The translations under genes were made by a program, and so were the position numbers. A stretch of DNA of 64,000 nucleotides, from positions 62,001-126,000 of the forward strand of contig NIVC01001733.1 of assembly GCA_002269645.1 (NCBI GenBank). The letters run 5' to 3'. The stretch is from Macrostomum lignano (taxonomy: Eukaryota). The notes beneath the pieces were generated by a model, which saw only the letters and a program-made list of their open reading frames with translations, was not told the origin of the DNA and did no database searches. Shown one piece after another: positions 14,201-60,115 of this stretch (within the stretch, counting starts at the first letter, position 1; the number at the start of each line of letters is the position of its first letter).

Positions 14201-14806
14201 TCATTCTTGGATTAAGTCCCCTTTGATAAGAATTTTAGCTATATGCCTGATATTCATATAGGCCTATATTTACATTTTAACTAACTTGAAAGTATAGATA
14301 GTTTTCAATAGTATAAATGCAAAGAGCAAAGTTTTTGTTACCTAATTGACAGTTGGAACGATTATTAGATCATCGTAGTTAGTATATTAGATTAGAATAA
14401 ATTAATAATAATAATTTGGGGGCCATAAGCATAAGCATAAAAATAAAATATTAATAAATGATAGAATCAATATTAGTAGCTAATATCAATAATAATTAAA
14501 TATTATTATTCTTCCTTTGTAGCCCTTTTTATATAACAAAATAAGAAAATAATATTAGGATAATCTTGCTGCTTAGTAAAAAAGATGCAAAACTAAAAAG
14601 CCAAGATTTGATTTATTTAATTAAACTTCAGCTAGCAACTTCACTACCTTTAGTTACTGTCTACCATTTATAACTGCTGTTAGTGTTAGCTTAGCCAATT
14701 ACTACTTACTATGCACTATTAGTATCATACTGGTTTAATCTATCTAATAAAAATTAGTCAATGCTATATAATGCTATAGTCAATATAGCTATTGCGCATT
14801 AGAGAT

Positions 14807-31170: not shown

Positions 31171-31252
31171 AACTCTCGCACAGCACCATAACATTCACTC
31201 ATGCACAGTACGTATGTATTGTAAACTATTTATTGTGCAAAAGCAAATCAAA

Positions 31253-36437: not shown

Positions 36438-36600
36438 GGCCGTAGCCCAGCGGTCTAGCGCAGGCTCTGGTGTGCCAGCGACCCAGGCTCGATTCCAAGT
36501 GCAGTTACATTAATTTGGGGCTGAATTGGAATCTTGGCTTGGCTCTGCTTGTGCAGTTAACGGCCTTGAGAGCCAACCCCCCAAGGCACATGAAGTGTAC
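36438..36600 (+). mobile_element. tRNA-derived SINE, copy 2
   Basis: GGCCGTAGCCCAGCGG (A box) ... GGCTCGATTCC (B box), followed by a roughly 100-bp body shared with 3396-3559. Confidence 0.78.
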
Positions 36601-37296
36601 ATGCCTAACGATAAAATAAAGTTAGGGCCGCCGTGTGTGTGCGTGCGTACGTATCCGCACGCTTGTGTGCCTGCTCAGGGGAGTCGGCGGAATGGGCAGT
36701 AATGCCTCTCGCCGGTTGTGTGCCTATGTCGCTTAAAGTGCGCCAGGGTGCACACAACCCCCTGCCTATAATAAAAAAAATAATACCCAAACGCTTTTTG
36801 TACTTGGCTGCTTTTCAGGGATTTTTCCAAAGTCAATGTTTTTTTAATGCTGCCGAGTACTAATTAACGTAAACACGGTGCCTCATGTGCTCCAATATCT
36901 AGTATACAGGATGATCTACATGTAGTTACCAGCTGCAAGTGCAAGAGAAAAATCGAAGCCACAAACGGACGGGACTTGAACGGACTTCATTATATTATTT
37001 TACACTGGGGTACCTCCCTTGTACCTGTGTTTATACACCACCAGCGACTGCACTGTCTACAGTACGAATCATGCCAAAGTGCATTTCGATGTTTAATCAA
37101 GTGCTGGCCAGGGGTCTGGGGGGAGGAGATACGGTTAAATTAAAAGGCAGTCAGCATTAGGATTAGACTGATGGCAAGATTGATCCTCCAGTGCGTCAGG
37201 GCCTTCACGCGCAGCGGGGGTCCGTTTCAGCATTCAAGATTTGCACCCGCTAAATTGCTTTGACCAGACCGGAGGCGCCGCGGTAGGCCTCGATAG

Positions 37297-37824
<528 letters not shown>

Positions 37825-38334
37825 TCTCCTAAAAGTGCATTGTCAGCTACCAGAGTAGCCAACTATGACAGACAACAGGCCTATTTTGGAAGTAGACTAG
37901 CCGTAGACGTGCTCTACAACTAGTTCTACATGGAGCTTTCGAAAAATGTAAAAAACAACTGGCACCAACACAATTTTTATCATTTTTTCAATCAAGTTGC
38001 TTCAAATGTTGATGCACAAAATAGAACTGCAACAAAAGGCTTTTTTGGCTTTTGCTCTCGGACTGAGAGTAAAATTTCTATTTGCAACAGAGAGAAATGC
38101 TTTGAATTTGGATGAGTTTTTTGCCAGAAGACAGATGCATAATAATAAAACTTACAAATAAAAATACTAGCACCGATAGATAAAACTGAGATATATCCCT
38201 AAACTACTACTGATACAACAGCTGTAAATTGAGTAGCGAGTAACAAATATTAAGAGAACAAACTGAATTTCATAAAAAAATGGACTTTTATTGCAAGAGA
38301 CTTAGGAAAACTCGAAAATGTTGGCTTAGTTCAG

Positions 38335-38479
38335 ATAGGCACAGCAAACATAAGGACGCAGCCAATAAAAATGACAGCCGCATCGTACCCGAAGTTGATC
38401 CAGTAGAGCGGCAGCGGACTGCTCTGGAACAGATAGTGCGGCAGCTGCAAGGATTGGAGCGGGAAAGGCGCTTTCTCAG
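38335..38479 (+). CDS. Isolated probable coding exon (coiled-coil)
   Basis: ttcag|AT..CTCAG|gtaacg boundaries; open frame RIVPEVDPVERQRTALEQIVRQLQGLERERRFL. Partner exons were not found. Confidence 0.4.
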
Positions 38480-38514
38480 GTAACGCCTGGTTGACAAGCA
38501 ACTAGTTATGTTTG

Positions 38515-39440
38515 CCCAAGTATGGCGCTCTCGACACTGATTTTGTTTCGCGCCAAATGCTCCAGTATGGCGCCCTCTGACACTGATTCTGCTTGGCGCC
38601 AAGTGCTCCACTATGGCACCCTCTGACACCGATTCTGCTTGGCGCCAATTGCTCCAGTATGGCGTGGCGCCCTCTGACACCGATTCTGCTTGGCGCCAAT
38701 TGCTCCAGTATGGCGTGGCGCCCTCTGACACTGATTCTGTTTCGCGCCAAGTGCTCCAGTATGACGCTCTCTGACACTGATTCTGCTTGGCGCCAAGTGC
38801 TCCAGTATGACGCCCTCTGATACTGATTCTGTTTCGCGCCAAGTGCTCCAGTATGACGCCCTCTGACACTGATTCTGTCTGGCGCCAATTGCTCCAGTAT
38901 GACGACGCCCTCTGACACTGATTCTGTTTCGCGCCAAGTGCTCCAGTATGACGCCCTCTGACACTGATTCTGTCTGGCGCCAATTGCTCCAGTATGACGA
39001 CGCCCTCTGACACTGATTCTGTTTGGCGCCAAGTGCTCCAGTATGACGCCCTCTGACACTGATTCTGTCTGGCGCTAATTGCTCCAGTATGACGACGCCC
39101 TCTGACACTGATTCTGTTTCGCGCCAAGTGCTCCAGTATGACGGCCTCTGACACTGATTCTGCTTGGCGCCAACTGCTCCACTATGGCACCCTCTGACAC
39201 TGATTCTGCTTGGCGCCAAGTGCTCCAGTATGACACCCTGACACTGATTCTGCTTGGCGCCAATTTCTCCAGTATGGCACCCTCTGATACCGATTCTGCT
39301 TGGCGCCGAGTGCTCCAGTATGGCACCCTGTGACACTGATTCTGCTTGGCGCCAAGTGCTCCAGTATGACACCCTCTGACACTGATTCTGCTTGGCGCCA
39401 AGTGTTCCACTATGGCACCCTCTGACACTGATTCTATTTT
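38515..39440. repeat. 46-49-bp minisatellite (CGCCCTCTGACACTGATTCTGTTTGGCGCCAAGTGCTCCAGTATGA), about 19 copies
   Basis: Direct reading; period 46 (38822 to 38868). Confidence 0.95.
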
Positions 39441-40964
39441 GCGCTCTATGGAGATTACTTTTAAGCAGATGCAGATAGAGTATACCTGATTACCAACAAT
39501 CAGAGCAAAAGCAGCACTGGCCAGACAGAAAAGTTGCTGCCAATTGGCCACAAACTGGCTAATGGCCAGGCGCAGCAGTACTAGAGTAGTTAGGTTGCCA
39601 GCTGTGGTCAGGCCATAGATAGTGACAGCAGAGCTGGTGCTGAGCTTCAGTTGGCATGGCTGGCATTTGTGCACTAGCAAGCACCAAGTTGTGCCAAACA
39701 GCATAGGAGAATACCATAGACTGCCAAGCACATTACTGGCTATAGCAATAGAACTAATCCAAGTATGGCCATTTGGTTAGGCTGTTATTAAATAGGGCCT
39801 AGTAATTTCATGAAAATATGAGTAAAGAAAATAATTTATTCATTGCTTTTTGTAGCCCATTTGATTTTACATATATTGAATTTAATTGAAGATATATTTG
39901 CCAATATAATAGAGCTTTTATCTATGGTAACAAGGCTAAAATAGCAACATTTGATTAAATTCATGTTTATAAGCCCAAATGGACTGCAAGAAGCTGTATT
40001 ATTCTTATATCATATCATTTTTTTAAATAATGCATAAATATTTTCTATAGGTCTATTTATTTTTTAAGTATAGATTTTTTCATCTGCTAGCCTAGTTAAC
40101 TTGCTAATATTAGACAAATTTCTATAAAAATAATTATTTGAATATGGTTTATTAATTATTTGTTTAGGCCTATCTATAAAATAATATTTAACTAAGCAAT
40201 GATTACCTATAAGACAAGACATGAATATTAGATCAATATATTATAGTTACAATTATAACTAAATGATGAATCATACTATAATATGATATAATATATAGTA
40301 TGATAAATTATCTAAACTAAAGAAGTTATTCTTGACATTTTATATTGATTTCTTGATTATAAAACCCCTTTGTTTATTAATGCAATAGTTTATTTACTTA
40401 TAGCCAACTTATTGACAAAAAAGAATACAAATACTAGGCTTATATATAAGCTAGGGCAGGCCTATTAGCATATTTATAATGATTTAATATTTTGATAGAT
40501 GGCCTGGTCTTTAAATGTAACCATAACTGAACAATGCCAATGGAATAATTTATCAAGTGGATTTGAATTATTTGCACATTTTAAAATTTAGGTTTATCAA
40601 TGGATTAAACTGAAATAGGCCTAATGGCTAATATAATATTATCAAAGAGTACTATATAATATGCCTTCGCAATGTATAATAATATTAGGCCTAGCCTAAC
40701 AAAACAATGCATTCGCATTTTTAAATATCAAGACGCTATGTCATTTTGCACTTATTTGAGGTGGGGCCGGGGGCTAGCTTCGCCTCGTCGCATGAAATGA
40801 TATTTTTGAAATTGATATTCTACTCACTTTTTAACAAAAAATAAACGATAAAAGCTTTTTATCGTTTATTTTTAATCCCCCTTTTATCCCCCACCCGCCC
40901 CCATCCCATTGCTTGCATCCCCTTATCCCTGCCCGCCAACCCGACCCGCCTCCCCCGCCGCATC

Positions 40965-42890
40965 GGGTGCTGTCTTCTGACATGAACCTGGCTTCTTGGA
41001 ATCTTCTGCTAAACGACCCAGACGGGCCAGATCAACAAGCTGCTACATCCGTTTCTTCGCCCGCTTTTTGACCTCATCAGCGACGGTCGAGATCTCCGGC
41101 TGCCTCAAGAAGCACGCGATCTGCTGCAATGGTGGCTGCAGGCAGTGGATTCGCTGCCACCTACGCCGCTGCACCAGCGCTTTCACCAATTGGTAGCCAT
41201 CGAGTCCGACAGCAGCTCCGAGGGCGCCGCTGGCATCGTAAGCGGCACCCGCTTTAACGACTGGGTGTATTTCAGCTGGGAGCACGACTTCGAGTCAGAG
41301 TTCAAAGACCTCCACATCAACTACAAGGAGGCCCTGGCTCCGCTCCTCGCCATCCTGCGCTTCCACGAGCATCTCAGCAACAGCCGGGTGGTTGTCTAAT
41401 CCGACAGCACGGCTGCAGTCGTGCATGATCAACAAGCTGTCCTGCAGGCATCCATCGCTTATTCGAATCTACCAGACGGTGGTCCTCCTGTGCCTCGAGT
41501 CTGGGATCCAGCTGCAGGCGTTTCACTTTCCCGGTCACATGCAGCTCACTAGCGACTCGGCCTGTCGGATGCTGAGCTCAAAGCATGAGCTCTTGAACTT
41601 TTTCTGTCGCCACTATGGCTCTTTGTGTGTCTGTCCTACTGAATTTGTCTCGCACACCATCTCTGCACGTGTCCCGCACCAACTCTTCTTTCACAGGTCG
41701 CAGCCGCGCTCCAAACCGCCCCGCCGTGTCCGTGCCCATCCTGTGCCGCCTGTCGCTCGCACCCAGCACTCGGAAGTCGTATGCCAGCCACCTGCGGCTC
41801 TGGAGGGAGTTCTTTCGACAGCAGCGGGTTTTCCCTAAGGCCGCATCGAAGTCAGACATCTACAACTTCACCTCCTTCCTCTTGGAGTGAGGCTGCGCCT
41901 CCTACTCAAGCGTGCAAATCAGCCTCAGGGCAGTGTGCTTCATCCACAGGGCGACGGCAGCACCAGACCCCACCAAGGACAACGCCCGACTGGCTCTCGT
42001 CTGCTGCGGAGCCCGACGCCTACTAAGCAGGCAGCCACGCAGGGCAGAGCCACTGCAGCCGCATCATCTCCGCCTGCTCTGCAACAGCCCTCTGCTTCAG
42101 CAATTGCTGCCCCGGCGCCTCTTCGTGGCCTTCAAGGCTGCGCTGCTGGTTGCCTGGTGGGGCGTCCTTCGTCTGGGCGAGCTTCTTCCGTCTACCGCTG
42201 GCGCTGCTTTGCGCCGCGGCGCGCTGTGGACTTGCCCCGGCGGCCTCCGCCTGACCATCGGCAAGTCTAAGACCAATCAGTTCAAGGAGCGTCAGCTGCT
42301 AGTGTTCCTTCCGCAATGCACCGACTGCCCACCGATCTGCCCGGTCTCTGCCCTCGCCACTCATCTGCGTGAGAACCAAGTTGTCGAGCCGCACCAGCCT
42401 CTCTTTGCTGTCCTGGGCGCCCGCAGAATCCCGTTGGCTGCCTCGACCTTCATCCGCCTGATCAAGCGGGGCCTGTCGATATGCGGCATCCCTGGGGAAA
42501 ACTTCTCTGGCCACAGTCTGCGCAGGGTCGGAGCCAGCGCCGCCTTCGGGGGTGGCCTCTCCGTGGCCGACATCCGCTGCCTTGGTGACTGGCGCTCCGA
42601 CTCCGTCTTCCGCTATTTCTCGGACGATGCAGTTTTTGCCCGCAGGCGCTCTGCCGTCCAGCGGATTGCTGCTTCTTTTAATTATCACTAACTCCTTCCC
42701 CCGCTTCTTCTTTTTTTCGGGGTTGGGGTCGCCTTTCCGACCTCGTCGCTGCTTTGTGCTCGCTGCCAACCCGCCGCCTTTGCCTTCCTTTCGCTGCTTG
42801 TGGGGTTGCGGGTTAACGGGGATTCAATTAATTGAAGAGAATAAATTAAAGGTGGTTGTTCTTTTTCATTTCGTCTTTGTCCAGTAGTTT
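40965..42890 (+). mobile_element. 5'-truncated tyrosine-recombinase retrotransposon (DIRS/Ngaro-type): RT end, RNase H, integrase N-terminus and YR
   Basis: LPQEARDLLQWW; IESDSSSEGAAG..HINYKEALA..V*SDSTAAV (RNase H, interrupted); LSLAPSTRKSYASHLRLWREF; YR ORF 41912-42691 with LRLGELL, KSKTNQ, CPV, GHSLRRVGAS, LGDWRSDSVFRY. Confidence 0.9.
41912..42691 (+). CDS. Tyrosine recombinase catalytic domain of the YR retroelement
   Basis: R..K..HxxR..W..Y catalytic residues present in one open frame. Confidence 0.88.
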   Translation: MQISLRAVCFIHRATAAPDPTKDNARLALVCCGARRLLSRQPRRAEPLQPHHLRLLCNSPLLQQLLPRRLFVAFKAALLVAWWGVLRLGELLPSTAGAALRRGALWTCPGGLRLTIGKSKTNQFKERQLLVFLPQCTDCPPICPVSALATHLRENQVVEPHQPLFAVLGARRIPLAASTFIRLIKRGLSICGIPGENFSGHSLRRVGASAAFGGGLSVADIRCLGDWRSDSVFRYFSDDAVFARRRSAVQRIAASFNYH

Positions 42891-44621
42891 TTCGTGTGGA
42901 TAAGTTTAGGCTTGAGCATGTAAAGGGCCGGGGGTGTTTTTGAATTTATGGACAATTTTGTACAGCATTTTAGAATTCGGTAATATGTGGTAAGTACATG
43001 TAGGTGCGCGCGAGTTTAAGTTGCCTAACAGTAGAACTACCAATGGGGGATCTCTGCCCCCTGACAACTATTTTTGCTGCGCCGGAAAAAAGCAACACAG
43101 GCCCACGAAGAACATGGGAAATGTTTTTAAATAATTAAACAAGAATCAAGTCACCGGCCTTCCAGACCGTCGAGATGTTCAACGATTCTGTCAGAAGGTC
43201 GGATTCTTCCCAGTTTTTGCCAAAGCCTCCAAATTTCATCAGCTCTTCGACTTCTCTTGACTTCTCTTAGTCAGTGGCCTTCACCCAGGCGGAACGTCTG
43301 GACCTTCAACAGATGGCACAAGGTGACTGTGGACACCACACCCTGTTGCGAATCAAGCCTCGTCAGTGGGCGCGGCAAATCACAACCGCTGGACATCCTC
43401 AGCTATAGTCTCTCAAGCATTCTGTCATCACCCCGACGCCGTCCAGCACCTTAATTTAACAGATGGCACCAGGTGACTATGGCTACCTGAGCGAGATTTT
43501 TCAACTTGACGGAATGAGAAATGGAGAACACGGGCGTGGGTTCAAAAATTCGACGCGGCTGGGACGCGGCTATGGCTACATACTCGTAGAAGTGCCACGA
43601 ACTTAAGATTTAAGACTCTAAATTCAGACTCTATTAGCAATCAGCGCCCTCCGTTAGGGAGCCAAACAAAAAATTGAACACAAATTTTTAAATAAACTAC
43701 ATTTAGAATCTTACCTCAGCCTTAACATCTCTCAGCAATTTCCAACATACGCCTTATCATCTCAGCAATCCCATCTCATCTCATTAATGATTTTTAATTG
43801 GGATTATTGGGCTTAATTTCTATATTTCTATTGATTGTCTAATTTGAGTAAACGTGGTAAACGTGAAGTCTGCAGATTTCTTCAGCTTGTGTAGATTAGA
43901 GAGGCTTTGCAATTAGGGTAGGGTAGAGATGCTGGGACTTTATTTTATTAATCTATATGGACCATTTTAGTGCACAAATCCGAAACTAATGTGACCGAGG
44001 CTTACGCACTTGACTCACAGATTTATTTCAATAATACAGCAGCTGAAAGATAGCACAAACTAAATTATTTGTGCTTTAAATTATACTTTATGGATACACG
44101 TTGCCCATTTGACAAATCTACCCGACTCAATGCACCCAAAAGCAATATAATACTGAGGTTAGAAGCCAATGCGAGCGCAAGACCTTCCATCTGCTAAACG
44201 AGCAAACGAGGCGGCGTGATAAAAACTTACTCGTTAAATATCGCGAGAAGCAACTGAAATATATTCGTTCTATTATTAACTTATTAAGCGTAAAATGTAT
44301 ACATTCATATACTAAAATACAGAGGTAACTCAGAGTAGAAATACTGGAACTAATTATCCCAACAAGACCCAGTTGGGACAGTGATCAGGCAGCGCACATT
44401 CACATTGCGTGCATGTACACTGATGTACATGCAGTTCTTTAGCTTTGAGAAAAGTCTAGCTCAATCTTCTTGCCTTTAATCCTGCAAACAACAACTTGAG
44501 ACTCGGTACTCAATAGCTACATGTACAATCGAAAGGTACATGGAGTACCTGTAGCTACATGTACTTTTCTTTTTATCGGCTCTTTCAAAGCCATTTCCGA
44601 TCAGTTGGAGCAGCGAATTGC

Positions 44622-46650
44622 TCACTGGCCAACAAATGTGGCCCTACAGGGCGCTACCGACGGGCCCAGCGGATGAGTTACACCGTTGTAGAACTCGAAC
44701 GGACTGAATGCACCCCGGTCCAGCTCCGGGTTCTTTGCGTCCAGCTGGCGCTGCTGCAGACAATGCTCGAGAATGTCAGCCCGCCGGGTTCGGTTGAGCT
44801 GGGCGTCGGCCGGGCACAGCGGGTTGCGCAGGTTGACGAACTGCCAGTTGTCGCGGGCAACAGCGTTTGTGCTGTGGTACGGGTGTCGATAGTGGTCCAC
44901 GATCGGCCAGCAGAACGCTCGCCTGCGTTCGAGCAGCGTGCGACCTCCCCACCGTGCCTGCGCGATTCGGGAATTTCTTTAACTGACCGGCATGCATAAA
45001 CGAATGCAATTTTGATCATGCGATGGGGTTTGAGGGTGCAATGGAGATGGGGACCACTGCTCTTGGCGTTTGAGATTAGAACTGCAATGGGGAGCCATAC
45101 AGGAGAGGTCGAGGAAGTCAGCTGCTCCTAGCGAAAAAGGCTTGCGTTCCTAAAAAACCTCACCTTCTGCGCTAAATCAACGCTAAAATATTACGCTCAG
45201 CGGGACTCTTTGCCCTCCTGGCAAAAAATTGTTCCTATGTGTCCGCTGAGAGAGCAGCCATTTTCAATTCAACCTGATTTTTTATTCGAAAATGAGATGG
45301 TCTCAAGTTTAATCAAATACGACCCAGATGCAAAGTGATTAAATTTTATACGAGGCTGGCTGAGTAAAGGCAGATCAATTGGCTAGCTCATTCAGATGTA
45401 ACATTTACTCGAGACATGTACTTCTGCACCTAGCAGTTATCTGTCTGAAGTCCTACAGAAAGACATTATCTGAACGAATCATTACACTAATAGACTGTAG
45501 TGGGGTAGTATAGTACTGTAGCAAAATTAATAATTCGGCCACCTCATGAACGAATCTACCTCCATGTTTGAGTTGGACATAATGTCCTCGGAGCGAGGCG
45601 CATCTGATACGGAGGAGTTGCTTGACTGAATGCGACTGCAGGAAAGTCCGCTAGTCGCTTCCCACAGTCGGGCGGCGACCTCTTCTACTCTGACGCCGTG
45701 TCTCATCGCATCCCGTCGTTTGTCAGCTGCATCCAGCCGCTTCGATCGCGAGCGCTGACTGCAGTTGGTGGTACTTCCGACTATGCTCTGCTCTTTTAAG
45801 CTTCCTGTTCCTCGATTGTCATCGCGCGAATGTGGACTGGGGAAACAGGGGAAGCCGCTGAAACTGCTGGTACTCGTACTCGACCTGGAGGATGCCGTTG
45901 ATGTTCTTGAGGTTTGCGATTTCTCATGCTTCTTTTGCTAGGGTAGGGATGAAAAATAACAGTTCAAATCATTATACTCGAAGCAGAACAAAAATTGAAG
46001 CATTGGGTTCTTACTTTGGATGTCTTAACGCTGGAACAGGATGCAGAATAGTCCAGTTTGCTGTGCGCGTTGCTGCTTAAATTTGATTCCGCATCTTGCA
46101 CCGTCTCTGAGGCGGCTCGAACAACCGACGTAACAACCTCGTTAAGTAGCGTGTCACTTCTGATCTCAGTGATCAGGGGACTCAGCGATTTCTCGATAAT
46201 GGTTGAGGACTGTTGGCCCCTGACAGTGCTGCTCATGTCCCGGCGCATTAAGCAAGATGAAGATGCGGAGGATGATTCAAGCACCACGGCGGATAATGCG
46301 CGTCGGAGTTGTGATAAAACCATAGCTCTCATTATTGAGTGTACGGCGGCACTAACATCCGAAGACGGGTTCGATGCTGATGGTTTGTAAGCATTTGTAT
46401 GAAGCAGCTGGTTGGGATGCAGCACTGGGCAACTGTCTGTAGTGATTTCTTCGACATCGCGGTAAGTGTCCTCCTCCTGAAGCTCATTGAGTCGGGCTTG
46501 AATGAGAGGCAGAAGCTGCAGCAAGCCGCTGTCAGTTTCAAAAATATCGCTGTTGATGTCGAAGCCCAGGCGCTTGCACAGATCGTTTATTAGGGTGATT
46601 TGCTCGGCTCTGAAGCGGCGAGACATTTGTAAGCTTTTTTCACCGTTCAT
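44622..46650 (-). CDS. Unidentified multi-exon gene; candidate exons 46650-46015, 45937-about 45560, 44957-44622
   Basis: Donor AAA|gtaaga, a 77-nt intron, acceptor ccctag|CAA and an open Ser-rich second exon. The third segment (RAFCWPIVDHYRHPYHSTN..) has strong C/G third-position bias. Linkage of the third exon is uncertain. Confidence 0.5.
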
Positions 46651-47846
46651 ACGTGACGGAGTTTTTTAAACTTTCAAGCCTAAATCAGGAACAGTGAATT
46701 TTTCGATGCATGTTGTAAGCTCTAGGTTCAAATCTAATAGCTCTAGAAAAAGAACAGACTCAAAAAGTTTGACCATAGAATGGTTGCATCTTTGTGAGCT
46801 GCAGTCAATTTGTGGTTGAAGTCGACCAAAAACTTGATAACTACATGATGCGTTTTCATTATAAGCATTCGTGTTGCTTCTTTTCCATCCATGTGAAATT
46901 TAAGCAACCGTCGAGAATCTCCAAAACGGAGGCAGCGAGAGCTGACAAAAAAGGCAGCCATAAATGGAAAGACAATCGCCTATGAAAGCTATTGATGCAA
47001 GTGATTGCAAATAAACTTTGGCGCTTAGACAGGGAGCAGAATCAGTGAGAGAGGCGGGTGATGTTCAGCCTAGTGACAGGCCCTGCGTGATTCCCACTGA
47101 GCACTACACTGAATTCATGCCATCCGGGCAAGCGGAATTGGGACTGACGCGTCTATTTCAGTCGGCGCCCCAACCCAACAGATCAAGCTGCTGGCCTTGC
47201 GAAAGATGTCTGACGAACTCCTTTTGACATTCTTCTTTTATTCAACAGCCTTTGTCATCTGCATACAAGTAGCGTAGGCAGGCAGACCGGCCGGAGCCCG
47301 AGCTCAGGCAGCAATTTTTTTAGTAATGAAAGTTGACGCCGTCGGGAAGTCCGCATCCGCATTAACCAGCGCAGGCTTCGGGCTTGAGCTTGAGCTCCCT
47401 TGCAGTTAACTATTTTTTCTATTCAACCAGCGCAGTTCCCCACTTCTGCTTGCCAGTTCAATGAGCATCAAGAATGACAGCAGGAACTCACCTGCCTTAT
47501 CCAGCTGCACTTATCCAAAAATCTGACTGTTTTGTTGACATTATTCACAAACTCTTTGAGCTGTCTGTTTCGCCGGCGTTTCACAAGCTATAGCCACTGT
47601 AGATTTTTCAAAACAATGGCCCTTCAATCTGCCAAAACACTTCCTGCTTGCTACAAGCGCCCTGTTTTAAGCCAATCCGAGAAGCACTTCGATTTGGCGC
47701 GCGTGTATAAGAAGAGGCGAATCTTTCTCTTCCTTCTGCCGCCTAATCTTGTTTTAGTTAGGACGGTGGAACAAAGTTACAGCAGGCCTAGCATCAAAAA
47801 GACGTAGTCTGGTTTCCAGCAAAGCCCTACAGGCATTGAACTGAAT

Positions 47847-48639
47847 ATGCAATACATTTGGCGGCTGGTGTGTCTGGCTGTAATATTCGCTGTGGTCGTA
47901 TCTGCCCAGACAAACGGTAAGTTGCTGAGACTTGCACATCAAGAATAATCTTGAGCACTCGAAATAAGCCGACTCAGCATTGGTTGTTGCAGAACTAAAC
48001 GAAGCTGAACAGGACGATGAAGTCGCGCATCTTGCTCGCGAACTCTCGAACGAACAGCCTCAGCACGAGGGTTTAAAAAAGCGAGACGGACAGCGCTGGT
48101 CGAGTGGCTTCGGTAAGCGAGCTGGTCAGCGCTGGTCGAGCGGCTTCGGTAAGCGACCGGATCAACGTTGGTCGAGCGGCTTCGGTAAGCGAGCTGGTCA
48201 GCGCTGGTCCAGCGGCTTCGGTAAGCGAGCTGGTCAACGTTGGTCCAGCGGCTTCGGTAAGCGAGCTGGTCAGCGCTGGTCGAACGGCTTCGGTAAGCGA
48301 GCTGGTCAACGTTGGTCCAGCGGCTTCGGTAAGCGACCGGATCAACGTTGGTCCAGCGGCTTCGGTAAGCGAGCTGGTCAGCGCTGGTCGAGCGGTTTCG
48401 GTAAGCGAGCTGGTCAACGTTGGTCCAGCGGCTTCGGTAAGCGAGCTGGTCAGCGCTGGTCGAACGGCTTCGGTAAACGAGCTGGTCAGCGCTGGTCGAG
48501 CGGTTTCGGTAAGCGAGCTGGTCAACGTTGGTCCAGCGGCTTCGGTAAGCGAGCTGGTCAGCGCTGGTCGAACGGCTTCGGTAAACGAGCTGGTCAGCGC
48601 TGGTCCAGCGGTTTCGGCAAAAGGGCTGGAGACGAGTAG
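47847..48639 (+). CDS. Neuropeptide precursor (238 aa) with signal peptide and 15 amidated 9-mers xxQRWS(S/N)GF-amide; exons 47847-47916 and 47993-48639
   Basis: Exon 1 encodes the hydrophobic signal MQYIWRLVCLAVIFAVVVSA; phase-1 76-nt GT-AG intron; acidic spacer; KKR then 15 x (peptide + GKR): AGQRWSSGF x9, AGQRWSNGF x3, PDQRWSSGF x2, DGQRWSSGF x1. Synonymous variation between repeats supports coding function. Confidence 0.96.
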
Positions 48640-50986
48640 GCATGAAAATCAAGCTGCTAAGTTGGTTATTCTAACGGATGATCAAAGCTCTGCTTGTTTT
48701 AAACTTTGTGTCAGTAAGTGACTCCGCGACAGAATGCTGGCAAGCAAGTGAAAAGAATGCGTCAATGTAATTTCTGCGGTTTCCCAAGAACTAAAAATAA
48801 AACCTTAACGCCCACTCTCCAAGCAAGAGTGTTTTGCTTTTGCGTTCGTCCATGGCACCCTTTTGAATGTTTTACTTTCGACAAAAATGAAGAATGTCAT
48901 CGGCACAGCAAGTGCTCAATGCACCGAACAGTGTAGGAATAGTTAGAGCAATTGATTAAAATCACGATAGAATTCAAAGATTCACTTCACAAAAGCCTTA
49001 ATAAGATCCGGGACGAGGCCAAAAAAGCCTGTGCAGCCAGAAATGCAAAAAAATAATGGCTATCCATGCATAAGCCAGCTTGCCTTTTGGCAGAGATCTA
49101 TGCATCTTGTCATATTCAGTGCGCTCATATCTTTCATAGTTCAGGATAATCAGTCACTAAGAAATCCCGATGTAGCACTTGCAATTAATTCTAAGAAACT
49201 GGGGTTGCAAGTACGGGAGCATCTCGTGTAAGAGTAAAGAAAATTCGCTTGAGACGTATGGTAACTATCACTGAATGCGTGCCGTTGAGCATATATTTGC
49301 TCATGGCGAGCTCGTGCTTTGAAGGGGCCAATTGAATTTCACAATAAATTCAACTCGTAAGCTTAAAATTAACGTACTACTGACGCGTTCAGATGCTGGT
49401 AGTTGAGAAAGTCGTCAGAAACTGGTCATCAGCATGTTACTTGACTCAGTTGACTATTTCTGTAGGTAATAACCCTTTCTGCAGTGCTCTCACTGATCTG
49501 TGTAATGGCTATAGTAAGAAGGCCGGAGTTTGCTGAGACGAAAGGTGGAGCCCTGCTAGGTGGGCTGATCGATGCTTATTTATTTTCAGACTATGGAATA
49601 AAATCACGCCACCAGAGTGGGGGTGAAGAATCGCCGCACTTGAAGTGCATGAATTGTACGCAAGGCCGATGTACATATAAATTGGGCTCGCGTGAGCACT
49701 ACAATCTGCTGACCCGGGGCCGCAGGATGACGAAGTGCGCACGATAGTAAAAAAGAGAGAAGGTTGGACACGCGGCCTAACCTGCAGATTTCATGTAGAA
49801 ATTTACACAAGTGTGCATCAAAGATCTAAGAAAAATGCGTAATAACAAGAGGCATTGCATTGTAGAAGCGAAAAAATAGTTTGTTACTTGTTTCTGCTTT
49901 ACCACCTCAAACAGTCTACTTGATCAGTACTGTGTACGACATCTTTCATCTAAAAAGTAATATGACGCTCAAAATATGTTTTTTTCAGCTGCCAGGCTGA
50001 CTGAGACTAGAACTAATTATTCCATCTCTGCATGGAAATGAATCAGTCAAGCGGCTGGTTTGCAACAATAAAAGCTGATAGTCAATGCCATCAATGGGAA
50101 TTCTATTCAAGTAATCTTCCGCATCCGTGAAAATCCCGATTTCTATGCAGCATCAAGGCAGTTGTCATGCGGAGAATTTTCGTACCATAAAATTCACTAA
50201 TTGCTAGAGCTAACCATGATCAGTTATACTTGGCCTCGGCAGGGATGCAGCCATCCCTGATTGAATGTAGCAATTTGAATATTGCTTGCGAGAGTTTAGA
50301 AAAGCTTTCTCCGTAGATTAAACGAAGGCAAAAAGCAGCAAGTCAGTGATTTTTTTCTTTTTCTTTGAGTTGTACTCAACTGCAAGCTACTCAAGCCGGT
50401 GTTTCTGGCAAAAGCCAAGAATGTTGCGATTGCGAGTTTTTTGTATTTTTACTGTTTTCTTTCAATTCTAGTTGAACTACCTACACCAGGGCCCCTGACT
50501 ACAGAACATTGTGCAGAGATGCAGATTTCAGGAATGGGTTGAATAAAAATTTAAATAGCGTTGTTGGGGATCAAAACGAGTTAAAAAGCTGAAGAAAATG
50601 TTTTTTTCTGAAAACATGACAAGGCAAGCAAAGCAAAATTCTATTTTAGAATCGCAAGCGAGATCAGGCTTGAAGACACAGCTACACTGGTCTGTAAGCA
50701 GGGAGCAGGCGGCCTAGACTCTAACAAGCAAAGGGAAATGGAAATAAATCAACACGAGCTCGAATTCCAATGGCAGCAAAAATGATTGCAAGCGACATCA
50801 GCGTCAGAATTCTAGGGACGGGGGGACAAGTGAGTTACACCGAAGCAGACTAAAGCAGATTCCTCTCAGTTGGTCAGTCAAGCGTGGCTCGGCAGGCTCG
50901 CATTGTGCGGCTTCCTCCATCGTCCAGAGTGGCTTCCGCAGCCTTTCTTCATCATATGTCTGGCCTTTTTTAATGCGAAGCTGAGC

Positions 50987-52339
50987 TCAGCTTGACAGGG
51001 CAGTTGCACCGCTGCGGCAGCCAGTAACTCCGGATGGCATTAGAAGCGGAATCTCCACCTGCTGATGCTGCGGTGAAGCCGGCTGCCGCTGAGACTTGTG
51101 AAACTGGCTCGGCCGCCGGTCAGCGCCGCGCAAACTGTTGCGGCTGCGCTGGCTGGCGTTGATTTGGCGGCGCTGAAAGCAGCTGAACGTCTGCTTCAAC
51201 TCGCGTCTAAAGCGGCCGGCCGAGGCCACATACAAGTAGAAATTGCCAACATTGCTCAGGTACATGACCATCTCGGCCAGGGCCTCGATCAGGTAGAAGT
51301 TGGCAATGCTGCCCAGGTCGCTTGAGCGCGTCAGATCGAACAAGAAGATGGAGAGTTTCAATAGCGCGATGGGCAGTGTGCAGAGCAGGTAGCAGGCGCA
51401 GATCGTGACCAGCATCACTGTGACCTGTCTGGCCGATCGACTCCTTCTGGGTGACGCCGTAAGAGTGCGCAGCCGTTCAGCCTGCTGATCCTGATGCTGG
51501 TGCTGATTCTGACGGCCTCGACGACTGCCGCAGGATGAAGCTGAAGCAAAGCTGCCCTCCAGAGACGGATGTTGGCGGTGCTGCCGCTGATGCCGGGGCC
51601 GCCCCTGGTTACCTGGCGTGGATCGCCTCGTGCATTTCGGTCGCACTAGATGAACGATGATGGCCAGGTTGAGCAGGAAGATTACCGTGAACGGTATCAG
51701 CAGGTAGCAGACAGTGTCAAACCAATAGATGAAGTAGGCGATGCCCAAGGCCGGCCGCAGGTCGCAGTCGTGGTAGGTAAACTCGGTGGTCAGAGTGGCG
51801 TTGATGTCGGCGTTAAACTCGGTGAGGTTGCGAACCATGGGCAGCAGATCCATGGTGTACATCCAGTGCGAATTGAACAGCAGCAGGTCGGCTGCGTAGA
51901 TTAGGGCCGCGGTCCAGCGGATGCGGCGTCGGCTATGCGTGTTGGTGCTCGCCCGCAGCGGTGACATAACGGCGTAGAAGCGCTCGATTGTCATGGCAAC
52001 GATAAGCCACACGGAGGCATAGCTGAACGAGAACTGCACGAAGAACGTCATCTTACAGCTGAGGCTGCTCAGCGTCTCGATTCGGAAGCCGAATGCTTCT
52101 TTCAGCCATTTTGAAAACAGGCCGGTCGAGAGAACCATCTGGTCGGCCACAGCGATAAGTATTAGATAGAGGTACAGTGGCACCGACTTCGAATGCCGAT
52201 GTAAGACCACCATGCCCAGGATGTTGCCCGCGGTGCCCACAGTCAGCAGTATCGGCGGCAGCACACACTTCACCAGCTTGCTCAGCCGGTAGGCTTGGTA
52301 GTTGTCGTACATAAACTGCTCATAGGGAAAGACGTACAT
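50987..52339 (-). CDS. Rhodopsin-family (class A) peptide GPCR, FMRFamide/myosuppressin-receptor-like group; single coding exon
   Basis: Seven hydrophobic segments: GTAGN (TM1), LIAVAD (TM2), C in ECL1/TM3, MTIERF (DRY variant), PFTVIFLLN (TM5), YLLCTLP (TM6), NFYLY (NPxxY variant), then FRREL helix 8. First ATG at 52339; an in-frame acceptor at 52349 may indicate an upstream exon. Confidence 0.93.
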   Translation of the reverse strand: MYVFPYEQFMYDNYQAYRLSKLVKCVLPPILLTVGTAGNILGMVVLHRHSKSVPLYLYLILIAVADQMVLSTGLFSKWLKEAFGFRIETLSSLSCKMTFFVQFSFSYASVWLIVAMTIERFYAVMSPLRASTNTHSRRRIRWTAALIYAADLLLFNSHWMYTMDLLPMVRNLTEFNADINATLTTEFTYHDCDLRPALGIAYFIYWFDTVCYLLIPFTVIFLLNLAIIVHLVRPKCTRRSTPGNQGRPRHQRQHRQHPSLEGSFASASSCGSRRGRQNQHQHQDQQAERLRTLTASPRRSRSARQVTVMLVTICACYLLCTLPIALLKLSIFLFDLTRSSDLGSIANFYLIEALAEMVMYLSNVGNFYLYVASAGRFRRELKQTFSCFQRRQINASQRSRNSLRGADRRPSQFHKSQRQPASPQHQQVEIPLLMPSGVTGCRSGATALSS

Positions 52340-54371
52340 CCTGCTCAACTGAACTAGTTGATGTTTTGAGTAGATATTTGAATTGAGAGGTCGAAGTGAC
52401 TGCCAAAGACAGGCTCTGACGTTCTAATATCTGAGAGTGTTGTAAGTGAAGAGCAGAGACGAGTCAGAGGATGGTATAAATACTAACAGTTAGGGATCCT
52501 CATCCTCTCCTTCCAATTCCCATTTCCCCATTTCTCTCCTACCCTCTGATTTCTCAGATTGGAGGCGAGAGGCTGAAGTGAGTGAGGCTTCATGGCCGGG
52601 AACATTTGCCAGAGCAAATCAGATGAGCCGATCTCTCTTCTCTGGCCTGCCTCCCCGGCACTCTGCAACTTTCTCTGGCAGAGACGATAGTTTGGGACCG
52701 CGGAACTGCTACACAGCGGCCGGAATTGACGCAGCCCCGCCTCCCGCTGTGCATTGACTCCGACCGTTCTTGTTCCGGTGTAGCGAGATTCGCCACCTAT
52801 GTTAAAGATTAGGCTTTATGCCTGCTAATGGGATGCTAGTGGCAGCTGATTCCTATTAATCTTGGAATGATTGTTCTGGCTACTGTGATTAAGTGATGAC
52901 AAAACGCAATCATTTCCCAAACTGCAAAAAGACAAGCACGTTTCTTCGGCCTCCTACCCTTCATCCTCTGTGCCGAGCCTAAGAATCATTCTTTCAGATT
53001 TGCTCGCTTTCTTATCTCGCATCGCAGATCAGTCGCTGAGGCCCCCTCTCTCATCAGTGCTGCCTCAATTTTAGCTCATAAAATGTAGAATCTCACGATC
53101 TTCGTAACTTTTTCTCTCAAGCCTTCAATCTCGAAGGCGCACCTGCATTTTATTCAACAAAGGTGAGTCTTTGAGCTCTTATTGATGGCCTAATTAAGCC
53201 AAACTATGTAGCCAGCCTGCTGTAGTTCGTTGAGTCCTTGCAGAGCAGCCTCAGCATTCAGGGCGTCGCCATCTGCTCTACGGTGGAGGAACTGCAAAAT
53301 AGCTATAATTACTAACATTAGTAAAGTTTTATAATGAATTTTGCAACCGTGGTTTTAATTTTAACTTTAGAACTTTTTCAGCTGAACGAGGTTAAAAGCT
53401 GGCGTGGCTAAACATTGAATGAGCAATGTGGTAATTGCGCAAGCCACAGGTCAAGTCTCGCGCACGAGCCCCTTGCTGAGTATCGCTTTCTAGTTGTCCC
53501 TGATATTGATTTATTATCACCACTAAAGAGCCTAATGAGTTCCAGGTGGGTGAAGTCATGCCATCGAGACCGAAATTATGAAATGTCAGGCGCACAGAAA
53601 AGGCCGCAAGAAAGTCAATTCGATGCATTGCAGTTCGATTTCGCACCGATCTCACGTCCTTGAGGTGTTCTGAGACATCTTATCAAATTGAGAACCGAGC
53701 GGAGAGTCGAATTTAATGAATAATTAGTCAGTGTCAATCTTTTGAGCAGGAAACCCTCCTCACTGGGTGCGGGGCTTCTCACTGGGTCCGGCCAGTTTTT
53801 AAAAGCATTTTCAAAACCTGATCTTAGTTCTCGTTTGAGAAGCCATCGTTATCCATCTCTGCGTTTCTGTAAATTAAATGACTGCATACTTGCCAGGCAA
53901 AGTTTATCTTTGATATTTTTCATTTCGAGTTTTTGAAAATGATCCCGTCGTAAGAAACAACTGGCTAACAGGGGTTGCTCAAAAGCTGCTTCCAGCCGTG
54001 AATAGTGTAAATTACAGGTAGATTTGGCCAGACAGAAATACGCAGCATTTGCACCGCAGCGTCAAACCGGCTCTCATTACGACTAGGGTGCTTCGAAGTG
54101 GAACTTCATTGTTCTCTGTCTGCCCTTTCACTCTTTGTAGTCAAACTACTAGAAAGCGAGCTTAAAGCCACTAATCTGGTGCAAAGACAAGTGCCTGAAG
54201 CTATGGATGTAAAGCCCCGGAATAAGAGATGCAAATGAGCAGTTCTCCACTACCGTAATTTCATCAGTTCCCTGCCGGTGAAAGGAATTGCTTTTCACGT
54301 TAATTAGCTAGAATGGCTAAAAAAGAAATTATCTTTTGAATGTTTTTGTTAGTAGTGAAGCGATCTCATCT

Positions 54372-57993: not shown

Positions 57994-58744
57994 TGCTATA
58001 CAGTATTCTACTAGCAACACGACTTCAAACTTTGCAATTCATATATAATATCGCTATCTAGTAGAGTCTTTTTACCATAGAGAAAGTTTTCAAGCGGGCC
58101 TTGGAAAAAATTCCTACCATAGATCTTTTATTCTTATAGATGTATAAATGATATTTGATTCCTACCAAGTTTAAGTTCTGCGTCCTGAGTTTTTGAGTAG
58201 TCCTTGGGAAATACTTGCATTTGTCCGAATGCCCAACAAGTGTCCTGTATATGGCTGAAAATCCGAAAACGACACTCTGGGCAATAGCGAATGAAGTGTC
58301 ATTTCACCGGTTTCCTAAGAAAAAAGAACTCCTTGCAAAATGTCTTCGAAATCTATCTAGAAAGGCAACGTTCCAACCAACCAATTACACTCGCATCTGT
58401 CTTTGCAGTTCGTCGAGTCGGACAGCTGAGTCAGAAACCTGCACAGAAAGAAACGGAAAACCTAGTGATGATCCCGATGCTCTCTCCTCTCCCAGAGAAA
58501 ATTGAAGCCAGAGGCGGTTGCCACTCAATTCAGCAGCACAACTACAGTATGCCGTACTACTTTACAAAGCCTCCACTAACTGAGAGATCTGACAAAGCCT
58601 CGGCATCGCGTCGACACGAGGCCGATTTTGTTGTCCCAGAGCAGTTGATAGCAGACTTCTTTCATGAGGATTCTTTCAACTCGTTGGAGCAACCAATACA
58701 AAAGTTTCAGGCCGAGGCGAAGCTACCTGATTCATTTCGTTCTC

Positions 58745-60115
58745 TAAAAGCTGTCACAAGGTCCAGTAAAGAGATTGAAGGCTCGGCTCTCTAAGAGCCG
58801 TCACAACGTCCAGTAATGAGATTGAAGACTCGGCTCTCTAAGAGCCGTCACAACGTCCAGTAAAGAGATTGAAGGCTCGGCTTTCTAAGAGCCGGCACAA
58901 GTTCCAGTAAAGAGATTTAAGGCTCGGCTCTCTAAGAGCCGTCACAATGTCCAGTAAATAGATTGAAGACTCGGCTCTCTAAGAGCCGTCACAACGTCCA
59001 GTAATGAGATTGAAGACTCGGCTCTCTAAGAGCCGTCACAATGTCCAGTAAATAGATTGAAGACTTGGCTCTCTAAGAGCCGTCACAATGTCCAGTAAAT
59101 AGATTGAAGACTCGGCTCTCTAAGAGCCGTCACAACGTCCAGTAATGAGATTGAAGACTCGGCTCTCTAAGAGCCGTCACAATGTCCAGTAAATAGATTG
59201 AAGACTCGGCTCTCTAAGAGCCGTCACAACGTTCAGTAATGAGATTGAAGACTCGGCTCTCTAAGAGCCGTCACAATGTCCAGTAAATAGATTGAAGACT
59301 CGGCTCTCTAAGAGCCGTCACAATGTCCAGTAAATAGATTGAAGACTCGGCTCTCTAAGAGCCGTCACAACGTCCAGTAATGAGATTGAAGACTCGGCTC
59401 TCTAAGAGCCGTCACAATGTCCAGTAAATAGATTGAAGACTCGGCTCTCTAAGAGCCGTCACAACGTTCAGTAATGAGATTGAAGACTCGGCTCTCTAAG
59501 AGCCGTCACAACGTCCAGTAAATAGATTGAAGACTTGGCTCTCTAAGAGCCGTCACAATGTCCAGTAAATAGATTGAAGACTCGGCTCTCTAAGAGCCGT
59601 CACAACGTCCAGTAATGAGATTGAAGACTCGGCTCTCTAAGAGCCGTCACAATGTCCAGTAAATAGATTGAAGACTCGGCTCTCTAAGAGCCGTCACAAC
59701 GTTCAGTAATGAGATTGAAGACTCGGCTCTCTAAGAGCCGTCACAATGTCCAGTAAATAGATTGAAGACTTGGCTCTCTAAGAGCCGTCACAATGTCCAG
59801 TAAATAGATTGAAGACTCGGCTCTCTAAGAGCCGTCACAACGTCCAGTAATGAGATTGAAGACTCGGCTCTCTAAGAGCCGTCACAATGTCCAGTAAATA
59901 GATTGAAGACTCGGCTCTCTAAGAGCCGTCACAATGTCCAGTAAATAGATTGAAGACTCGGCTCTCTAAGAGCCGTCACAATGTCCAGTAAATAGATTGA
60001 AGACTCGGCTCTCTAAGAGCCGTCACAATGTCCAGTAAATAGATTGAAGACTCGGCTCTCTAAGAGCCGTCACAATGTCCAGTAAATAGATTGAAGACTC
60101 TCTAAGAGACGTCAC
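58745..60115. repeat. 47-bp satellite (AAGAGCCGTCACAATGTCCAGTAAATAGATTGAAGACTCGGCTCTCT), about 29 copies
   Basis: Direct reading; period 47; CGGCTCT-CTA-AGAGCCG hairpin across unit junctions. Confidence 0.97.

Follow-up and report, generated by a model that had tools for sequence, protein, structure and literature searches.

A fifteen-copy precursor of predicted amidated nonapeptides in Macrostomum lignano and its similarity to planarian npp-8 and molluscan Wx3Yamide

Introduction

The planarian precursor Smed-npp-8 was reportedly first predicted by McVeigh et al. 2009. This precursor (Schmidtea mediterranea neuropeptide precursor-8, GenBank GU295189) consists of a signal peptide and three KR- or R-flanked, Gly-extended peptides ending in DQVWHSGY, GQAWYSGY and DQAWYSGY, and its expression is found in the lateral cephalic ganglia, ventral nerve cords, pharynx tip and intestine (Collins 2010 supplement, PMC2953531). 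In that supplement the peptides are predictions, given in the prohormone catalogue file only (PMC2953531). Wx3Yamide peptides are known from oysters (Stewart et al. 2014, PMC4200219) and from scallop (Zhang et al. 2018, PMC5996578), where SNKWSIAYa, LRQGWNIAYa and QQGWHIAYa have been listed; the group counts as molluscan in the literature, and neither a function nor a receptor is known for it (PMC8398477).

In our study, a locus of the macrostomid flatworm Macrostomum lignano was analysed within a 64,000-nucleotide stretch of contig NIVC01001733.1 (the window), in whose numbering all coordinates are given. A sequence-only reading had proposed a multi-copy amidated neuropeptide precursor at this locus, possibly a shortened and tandemly amplified peptide of allatotropin/orexin type. 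The first part of that proposal is supported by the spliced anatomy, the GKR-delimited units and a frame-specific pN/pS ratio. For the second part, other relatives were found to be closer.

Materials and methods

Candidates for exon 1 were all ATG-plus-GT combinations up to 3.3 kb upstream which splice in phase to position 47993 (n = 36). Selection on the repeat array was compared with that on the 7 other arrays of the same window whose period is divisible by 3. C-terminal 8-mers of peptides were compared by BLOSUM62 scoring, and the background was a set of 456 such 8-mers, all amidated, taken from the top 150 multi-copy precursors among 1.84 billion proteins.

Results

Gene structure

The gene lies on the forward strand and has two exons joined in phase, with a coding sequence of 717 nt and a spliced product of 238 aa. 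The coding part of exon 1 (47847-47916, 70 nt) begins with an ATG having A at -3 and encodes MQYIWRLVCLAVIFAVVVSA followed by QTN. The predicted signal peptide, M1-A20 (47847-47906), has 1 basic residue and a hydrophobic core of 12 residues, and the predicted cleavage site is preceded by V-S-A, with its small residues at -3 and -1. The exon closes with Q-T-N and one further base, the first of codon 24. Among the 36 in-phase candidates this choice alone shows signal-peptide hydrophobicity (Kyte-Doolittle 3.40 against 2.52 for the runner-up), and a GTAAGT donor is unique to it among the 12 top-ranked candidates listed. The phase-1 intron (47917-47992, 76 nt) is of GT-AG type and runs from GTAAGT to TTGTTGCAG, with the donor ACG/GTAAGT at 47916/47917 and the acceptor, TTGTTGCAG followed by AA, at 47992/47993. 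P0015, the automated gene model on public record, arrived at the same acceptor independently.

Exon 2 (47993-48639) opens with the acidic spacer QTNELNEAEQDDEVAHLARELSNEQPQHEGL (47993-48075 plus exon-1 bases 47907-47916), in which 9 of 31 residues are D or E and 1 is K or R. It is followed by KKR, the predicted first prohormone-convertase cleavage site (48076-48084), by 15 tandem 12-residue units of the form x-x-Q-R-W-S-(S/N)-G-F-G-K-R (48085-48624), and by a C-terminal remnant AGDE with the TAG stop codon (48625-48639). A signal-peptide exon absent from the open reading frame track, an acidic spacer and 15 GKR-delimited 9-mers had all been read from the sequence earlier, and each of them was recovered here. 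An AATAAA at 48796-48801 (forward strand), about 157 nt past the stop codon, is the likely polyadenylation signal. A TATAA motif at 47706-47710, about 140 nt 5' of the ATG and the sole one within 47500-47847, is a weak candidate for a core promoter element.

The only public protein from the locus is a 1305-aa chimeric automated model, which has no signal exon and changes frame within the array; UniParc UPI0007A1322A covers the locus at 97-100% identity. The public gene model is corrected by the present structure, as the chimera hides a clean 238-aa neuropeptide precursor.

Repeat array and selection

Minisatellite arrays make up about 22% of the window and many of them are open in several frames. 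In the array of the present gene, TRF found a 36-nt unit repeated 15.0 times (88% matches, zero indels; 48079-48617), which in codon register corresponds to 48085-48624. Four types of unit are present, namely AGQRWSSGF-GKR (9 copies), AGQRWSNGF-GKR (3), PDQRWSSGF-GKR (2) and DGQRWSSGF-GKR (1), so that the amide-donating Gly and the dibasic site close 15 of 15 units, and KKR precedes unit 1. A three-unit stretch of 108 nt is exactly duplicated inside the array (48373-48480 is identical to 48481-48588), from which a polymorphic copy number would be predicted. A degenerate back-translation of the core gave 15 matches in the window and 0 in 100 shuffles. Neither a second copy of the gene nor another GKR-rich precursor was found within the window.

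Between the copies, pS is 0.384 and pN is 0.036 in the peptide frame (ratio 0.09), whereas the other two sense frames of the array give pN/pS of 1.0 and of about 90-140. The 10 core codons carry 9 synonymous variable changes against 1 non-synonymous change (S/N). In the 7 control arrays, every stop-free frame has pN/pS of at least 0.6. Purifying selection on the peptide sequence is thus seen in the peptide frame alone, and the array is more than a chance or plain minisatellite.

Similarity to described peptides

Judged by sequence, the closest relatives of the gene are planarian npp-8 and then molluscan Wx3Yamide, and not allatotropin. The C-terminal 8-mers of npp-8 score 31-32 against the 15-copy peptides, above all 456 background 8-mers; the residues at -8, -7, -5, -3 and -2 are identical, with N at -3 in 3 of the 15 copies, and F conservatively replaces Y at -1. 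At the precursor level, BLASTP against npp-8 gives E = 6e-9 with a colinear HSP (residues 8-89 against 3-92) running from the signal peptide to the C-terminus, this similarity being driven by the repeats. Moreover, npp-8 is the sole Schmidtea or Schistosoma prohormone in the Collins 2010 supplement having GFGK, GYGK, AYGK, AFGK, SFGK or GFGR. The comparison with published neuropeptide lists, which had been suggested as a check by the sequence-only reading, has thus returned a catalogued planarian precursor as its match.

The top background 8-mer, QQGWHSGF (score 29), comes from the Wx3Yamide-type precursor P0151, which has the F-ending copies QQGWHSGF and QQGWYGHF. The Trp at -5 and the multi-copy KR/Gly architecture of Wx3Yamide precursors are present in the M. 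lignano gene, with a terminal F and not Y. In the HMMER ranking, allatostatin-A precursors stand above Wx3Yamide ones. As the evidence for homology is a stretch of 8-9 residues present in many copies, and as this repetition inflates the E-values of both BLAST and HMMER, convergence on a short motif with an aromatic amide is possible.

WSSGF repeats were found in no other protein among 1.84 billion cluster representatives, and the exact 238-aa product was not found in a collection of 15 billion proteins including transcriptome-derived ones. A word-indexed homology search with the whole and the shortened precursor gave no match at E <= 10; this negative is weak, because the index evidently misses the chimeric model of the same locus. 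A metagenome scan with back-translated patterns produced 167 pattern matches, of which 0 were confirmed. A full-text literature search for the peptide strings yielded no relevant paper among the articles covered, such peptides appearing in supplements or in other journals.

A neighbouring receptor gene

An intronless ORF for an orphan GPCR of peptide type lies on the reverse strand at 50987-52339, 2.3 kb from the precursor gene and converging on it. Its best homologue is a Macrostomum lignano protein (41% identity), followed by trematode GPCRs. The ORF carries ER[F/Y] in TM3, Thr replacing the Trp of TM6, N..NFYLY in TM7 and a Pfam Srw match, features that recall a receptor expansion in protostomes, the known ligands of which have an amidated aromatic residue at the C-terminus (PMC8557429). 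An assignment as an orexin/allatotropin-type receptor was rejected, since orexin receptors fall far below adrenergic, ghrelin, opioid and GPR139 receptors; among solved GPCRs, the orexin receptor reaches 7e-7 and the best match 6e-11. On look-up, no record was found for the exact products of the GPCR ORF, of its M. lignano homologue or of a TTG-initiated ORF.

Flatworms have many receptors of this aromatic-amide type, and the adjacency may be due to chance. That the precursor and the convergent GPCR form a physically linked ligand-receptor pair is an improbable idea on present evidence. If true, it would provide the first receptor for npp-8/Wx3Yamide peptides and would establish a single spiralian-wide Q-x-W-x3-[Y/F]-amide signalling system.

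Discussion

The locus is read here as a true, two-exon macrostomid preprohormone gene, which would give 15 amidated peptides, would be by descent the counterpart of planarian npp-8 (...[D/G]Q[V/A]W[H/Y]SGY-NH2) and would group, together with npp-8, with molluscan Wx3Yamide (QQGWHxxY/F-NH2) under the common pattern Q-x-W-x3-[Y/F]-NH2. A probability of roughly 70% is given to this reading as a whole.

The processing steps proposed for the product are those of standard neuropeptide biosynthesis. The 238-aa product would enter the secretory pathway and be cut by signal peptidase after Ala20; a PC2-type convertase would then cut after each KR, with KKR at the first site, K and R would be trimmed by a carboxypeptidase, and the exposed Gly would be converted into a C-terminal amide by peptidylglycine alpha-amidating monooxygenase. 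By these steps one transcript would give 15 nonapeptides, with a predicted yield of 9 AGQRWSSGF-NH2 (computed [M+H]+ 994.485), 3 AGQRWSNGF-NH2 (1021.496), 2 PDQRWSSGF-NH2 (1078.507) and 1 DGQRWSSGF-NH2 (1038.475). A pc2 homologue with an RNAi phenotype is known in M. lignano (PMC4490696). The invariant Q-R-W-S-x-G-F-NH2 is the probable functional core, and the target receptor would presumably be a rhodopsin-type peptide GPCR. Neuronal expression of the gene would be expected from such a product. The copy number would have risen from 3 to 15 through recent tandem duplication.

Four other explanations were weighed against this reading. The array could be a non-coding minisatellite of a repeat-rich genome, open in several frames by chance, as the abundance of such arrays in the window and the array's own openness in 4 of 6 reading frames might suggest. 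This explanation was rejected on the dN/dS controls and is the least credible of all, as the low pN/pS falls exactly in the GKR-peptide frame and is matched in no control array; the 15 copies are without indels, directly upstream there is a signal-peptide exon that is in phase and has a consensus donor, and the acidic spacer, KKR entry site, clean stop and AATAAA are all present. If the neuropeptide gene is real, it might still be an invention of macrostomids that has come to resemble npp-8 and Wx3Yamide by converging on a short motif with an aromatic amide. Short amidated peptides are prone to this, and only about 5 of 8 residues are common to them here; the lack of any other protein with WSSGF repeats and of convincing similarity in the non-repeat parts also fits such an origin. 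This is an unlikely explanation, although the strongest of the four, since the shared G/D at -8, Q at -7, W at -5, S at -3, G at -2 and aromatic residue at -1 are the positions invariant within each family, npp-8 outscores every background peptide, and npp-8 comes from the same phylum with an identical precursor layout. A lineage-specific family had also been the fallback of the sequence-only reading; it comes closer than allatotropin, and the precursors that do match the gene are planarian npp-8, already catalogued, and those of molluscan Wx3Yamide.

A divergent allatostatin-A/buccalin-type precursor, whose FGL-amide has drifted to SGF-amide, is a less probable origin. Past the self-match, most of the HMMER matches listed with readable repeated amidated peptides are allatostatin-A precursors, 9 of the 12 positions of a scorpion 'PDQRFSFGLGKR' agree with 'PDQRWSSGFGKR', and allatostatin-like receptors and bioactivity have been reported for flatworms (PMC6114109). 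The multi-copy KR-delimited architecture is typical of allatostatin-A, with which the aromatic residue at -5, frequent Ser at -4, Gly at -2 and similar R-containing N-terminal halves (P0019) are also shared. However, much of the similarity sits in processing sites and in the dipeptides of the spacers, npp-8 8-mers (31-32) outscore the best ones of allatostatin-A (25-26), and the signature Y/F-x-F-G-L/I-NH2 is absent: all copies end in W-S-(S/N)-G-F, so that 15 of 15 have Ser/Asn and not Phe at -3, and a terminal Phe in place of Leu/Ile. A polyclad flatworm, moreover, has its own annotated allatostatin-A/buccalin precursor (PMC10396302) and likewise a separate orexin/allatotropin precursor (PMC10396302, PMC13551398), which counts against the allatotropin/orexin link of the sequence-only reading as well. 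This link is slightly less probable still and finds no support in our comparison. R-W-S-S-G-F-NH2 does share R, S, G and F with the annelid R-I-S-H-G-F-NH2 (BLOSUM62 6-mer score 19), the amidated G-F C-terminus, the upstream Arg and the Ser at -4 being common to both, and this ending agrees with the Eisenia peptide. But npp-8 and Wx3Yamide peptides reach 25-29 where the Eisenia heptamer has 19, and they outscore allatotropins at all lengths tested; the 8-mers of scallop (GFRQGIVMRIGHGFa) and Manduca (GFKNVEMMTARGFa) allatotropins score 12 and 11, no higher than background, the scallop value being equalled or exceeded by 98 of the 456 background peptides. Further, allatotropin is a single peptide of 13-14 residues per precursor with a conserved N-terminal GF and is without the Trp and Gln invariant here, whereas the 15 copies are 9-mers beginning with AG, PD or DG (0 of 15 with GF), and the nearby GPCR shows no particular likeness to orexin receptors. 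The gene can be struck from the candidates for the 'missing' allatotropin ligand of flatworms, a role that looked attractive but finds no support.

The reading as an npp-8 counterpart makes the gene a new and unusually high-copy addition to a known peptide kind, its nearest kin being npp-8 and Wx3Yamide. The neuropeptide set of macrostomid flatworms gains a predicted peptide of high yield (15 copies), in a species used as a model of regeneration and ageing. Further, npp-8, listed among 'miscellaneous amidated' peptides, Wx3Yamide, listed as 'molluscan', and the 15-copy gene, which are treated separately in the literature searched, are now linked, and their shared pattern suggests an older spiralian family behind all three.

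In comparison to Wx3Yamide, the gene has the same multi-copy, KR-delimited precursor, with Trp at -5, an amidated aromatic residue at -1 and, as is often the case there, Q at -7. In the bivalve-like precursor P0049, 9-mers such as APGKWNIAYa likewise come from tandem units of 12 residues, and QQGWHSGFa of P0151 is identical at 5 of the last 7 residues. On the other hand, most Wx3Yamide copies end in Tyr and are variable at -4 to -2 (H-T-T, S-I-A), the gastropod copies are spaced by long acidic spacers, and Wx3Yamide peptides begin at Q (probably pyroglutamate), whereas a two-residue N-terminal extension is found here. In case of npp-8, the three peptides are of 12-15 residues and end in Tyr, with H/Y at -4 and V/A at -6, whereas the M. 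lignano gene has 15 nonapeptides ending in Phe, with S at -4 and an invariant R at -6. Both precursors come from the same phylum and share a signal peptide, a spacer and dibasic-flanked, Gly-extended peptides with the C-terminal [G/D]-Q-x-W-x-S-G-aromatic-NH2.

Gene structure and existing models

The precursor gene was found to consist of two exons (47847-48639, +). Exon 1 starts with the ATG at 47847, encodes MQYIWRLVCLAVIFAVVVSAQTN and ends in a consensus donor (ACG/GTAAGT); the 76 nt intron begins at 47917 and closes with a pyrimidine-rich acceptor (TTGTTGCAG/AA), exon 2 beginning at 47993. This phase 1 splice rejoins the long ORF at 47980-48639 and gives a 717-nt CDS for a 238-aa precursor. 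All ATG-plus-GT pairs in phase with 47993 were compared as alternative first exons over 3.3 kb upstream (n = 36). The N-terminus from ATG 47847 is far more hydrophobic than that of any other candidate (3.40 vs 2.52 for the next), and among the 12 top-ranked candidates listed it is the only one with a GTAAGT donor. The predicted signal-peptidase site (VSA/Q) is followed by a spacer of 31 residues (9 acidic, 1 basic), KKR, 15 contiguous 12-residue units and a C-terminal AGDE-stop. Before GKR, the units read AGQRWSSGF (nine copies), AGQRWSNGF (three), PDQRWSSGF (two) and DGQRWSSGF (one). These data show the two-exon organisation, the features of a signal peptide and the dibasic and glycine signals on every unit, and the signal-peptide exon, spacer and 15 GKR-delimited 9-mers described by the sequence-only reading agree exactly, coordinates included. 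A TATAA motif lies ~140 nt upstream of the ATG and an AATAAA motif 157 nt past the stop codon, both on the plus strand. A TTTCCAG at 47814-47820 (+) ends 27 nt before the ATG and could, speculatively, be a spliced-leader trans-splice acceptor.

With the precursor as query, HMMER was run exhaustively over 1.84 billion cluster representatives and gave a single near-identical match, the protein P0015 (E = 9e-69). This 1305 aa, UniParc-only entry (UPI0007A1322A) is the sole public protein for the 31200-48720 region, and its segments align to window positions 31.5-48.7 kb with 97-100% identity. The UniParc number of P0015 is some 116,000 entries away from that of the M. lignano protein A0A1I8GZ46 (UPI0007A2F8F1), which makes M. 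lignano the most likely source, in keeping with a G+C content of 45%. It is a chimeric automated gene model in which unrelated ORFs are strung together. P0015 joins the precursor gene at acceptor 47992/47993, as in our spliced reading, lacks the signal-peptide exon, covers 7-8 repeat units (about half of the peptide array) and shifts frame at 48340/48341 through a pseudo-intron into a meaningless VNVGPAASVSELV frame. The exact 238-aa precursor is absent from a 15-billion-protein collection. P0015 also takes in a transposon-like recombinase ORF of 259 aa at 41912-42691 (+), containing ...GHSLRRVGASAAFGGGLSVADIRCLGDWRSDSVFRYF, which resembles the catalytic part at the end of a Crypton/DIRS-type tyrosine recombinase and has no Pfam match at E <= 0.01. 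Elsewhere in the window, a 119-aa ORF at 4014-4373 (+) with Mos1-transposase-type HTH domains (HTH_48, HTH_32 and HTH_24) is probably a mariner-family transposase remnant, and a complete ENTH domain exon at 22265-22732 (+; Pfam PF01417, E = 3e-51) is part of an epsin-type endocytic adaptor gene.

Selection on the peptide array

Whether the array is coding or a minisatellite matters because tandem arrays abound in the window. At least 17 high-scoring minisatellites with periods of 5-96 nt occupy ~14 kb (22%), examples from the whole-window scan being 6272-6867, 8604-9428, 12208-14213, 19356-21853, 26245-27395, 32976-33775, 38519-39435 and 58741-60100, and many of them are open in several frames, giving long spurious ORFs. 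The peptide array itself is open in four of six frames and is reported by TRF as a period of 36 repeated 15.0 times, with 88% matches and an indel rate of 0%. Since its copies differ at 12% of nucleotides, they were compared at the codon level. The peptide frame gives pS = 0.384 and pN = 0.036 (ratio 0.09); pN/pS in the remaining two sense frames is ~1.0 and ~90-140. Among the ten core codons (QRWS-x-GFGKR), nine variable changes are synonymous and one alters an amino acid (S/N), the remaining amino-acid variation being confined to residues 1-2. None of the seven other window arrays with a period divisible by three has pN/pS <0.6 in any stop-free frame. Moreover, the degenerate back-translation of the core gave 15 matches, all in the peptide array, with none in the rest of the window and none in 100 shuffles. 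Selection on the peptide is established; the observation is considered confirmed, and the coding reading secure at the sequence level. An exact 108-nt duplication of three units in tandem (48373-48480 = 48481-48588, +) implies recent unequal crossing-over; the array is therefore still expanding by unequal exchange with the peptide kept constant, and its copy number is probably polymorphic.

Family relationship of the peptides

The HMMER matches beyond P0015 are multi-copy amidated precursors with the GKR skeleton in common, the majority of those listed with readable repeated peptides being arthropod allatostatin-A precursors, such as that of a scorpion (PDQRFSFGLGKR). A separate subset carries Trp five residues ahead of the amidated aromatic: P0024 of the gastropod Batillaria (QQGWHTTYa, QQGWETAYa), P0049 (tandem APGKWNIAY-GKR units) and P0151 (peptides including QQGWHSGFa). 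By the literature this subset is the Wx3Yamide family, named in oysters (PMC4200219), represented in scallop by the peptides SNKWSIAYa, LRQGWNIAYa and QQGWHIAYa (PMC5996578), and called molluscan, without known function, in 2021 (PMC8398477). Further, the planarian prohormone catalogue supplement was scanned for x-G/A/S-F/Y-G-K/R strings and gave one match only, Schmidtea mediterranea neuropeptide precursor-8, Smed-npp-8 (MKLVFMLLFSLNILILSNRWADGMMQDYLDRLKFLASKRLADKKDPRFSDQVWHSGYGKRNYYNRFDGQAWYSGYGKRNDAGDQAWYSGYGR), which was cloned by 3' RACE and whose peptides appear there as predictions (PMC2953531). Its three peptides end in DQVWHSGYa, GQAWYSGYa and DQAWYSGYa. BLASTP of npp-8 against the precursor gave E = 6e-9, and one of the HSPs was colinear from signal peptide to C-terminus.

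C-terminal 8-mers were compared by BLOSUM62 against 456 distinct amidated 8-mers from the 150 best HMMER hits. The npp-8 8-mers score 31-32, above all 456; the best of the 456 is the Wx3Yamide-type QQGWHSGF (29), and the best allatostatin-A 8-mers reach 25-26. The sequence likeness to npp-8 and Wx3Yamide is established. Membership of the allatotropin family, which the sequence-only reading raised as a possibility (a multiplied allatotropin/orexin-type peptide), was a reasonable idea but is unlikely, failing on architecture and similarity. Allatotropin precursors carry a single GF-initiated peptide of 13-14 residues, and this defining architecture is not matched here. Scallop and Manduca allatotropin score only 12 and 11, 98 of the 456 background 8-mers equalling or exceeding the scallop value, and the annelid heptamer quoted in that proposal reaches 19, compared with 25-29 for the npp-8 and Wx3Yamide peptides. 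Fasciola does possess allatotropin-like and allatostatin-like receptors with no ligand reported (PMC6114109). In the larva of a polyclad flatworm, an orexin/allatotropin precursor and an allatostatin-A/buccalin precursor are both expressed and are annotated separately (PMC10396302; review PMC13551398); bona fide flatworm genes of both kinds are therefore distinct in at least one lineage, which counts against the proposal. The precursor gene is best described as an unusually high-copy, now correctly modelled member of the flatworm npp-8 kind, related to molluscan Wx3Yamide. A Macrostomum npp-8 may already be listed in the flatworm catalogues of McVeigh 2009 or Koziol 2016.

Predicted processing and candidate receptor

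Following the standard pathway, signal peptidase would cut after Ala20, a PC2-type convertase would cleave at KR, carboxypeptidase would trim the basic residues and PAM would amidate the C-termini, yielding 15 amidated nonapeptides per precursor to act on a peptide GPCR. The M. lignano pc2 homologue has a strong RNAi phenotype (PMC4490696).

A rhodopsin-family GPCR is encoded by an intronless single-exon ORF at 50987-52348 (-; Pfam 7tm_1 6e-21, Srw 5e-6), 2.3 kb downstream of the precursor gene and convergent with it on the opposite strand. The GPCR itself spans 50987-52339. The closest homologue comes from Macrostomum lignano, also a GPCR (41% identity across 96% of length), and trematode GPCRs and one annelid GPCR rank next. 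In the window's receptor TM3 contains ERF, the TM6 Trp is replaced by Thr and TM7 carries N..NFYLY; ER[F/Y], the TM6 Thr and N..NFYLY are common to the flatworm and annelid homologues. These motifs are similar to PROF1-II, a pattern given in a table of flatworm orphan receptors, all classed as peptide-responsive (PMC3261222). Among solved structures it matches GPR139 and is not specifically orexin-like, and the Srw and GPR139 matches are compatible with a protostome receptor expansion whose known ligands have amidated aromatic C-termini (PMC8557429). The GPCR is a possible candidate receptor for the adjacent ...GF-amide peptides; its position is suggestive, but such receptors are numerous in flatworms.

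Comparison with known systems

Expression of Smed-npp-8 extends over the lateral cephalic ganglia, the ventral nerve cords, the tip of the pharynx, the intestine and some marginal sub-epidermal cells (PMC2953531), and by analogy our best guess is that the Macrostomum peptides signal in the brain, pharynx or gut. The npp-8 peptides are identical to [G/D]QRWS(S/N)GFa at positions -8, -7, -5, -3 and -2, with a conservative exchange at -1, and the matched positions are those invariant within each gene. The molluscan Wx3Yamide peptides begin directly with Q, probably cyclised, and the invariant core of the Macrostomum units likewise starts at Gln; one could thus imagine, as pure speculation, a pyroGlu form trimmed at the N-terminus. 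The npp-8/Wx3Yamide connection was not found in the literature searched. Linking npp-8 to Wx3Yamide, a modest comparative point based on short motifs, would make the 'molluscan' family a spiralian one.
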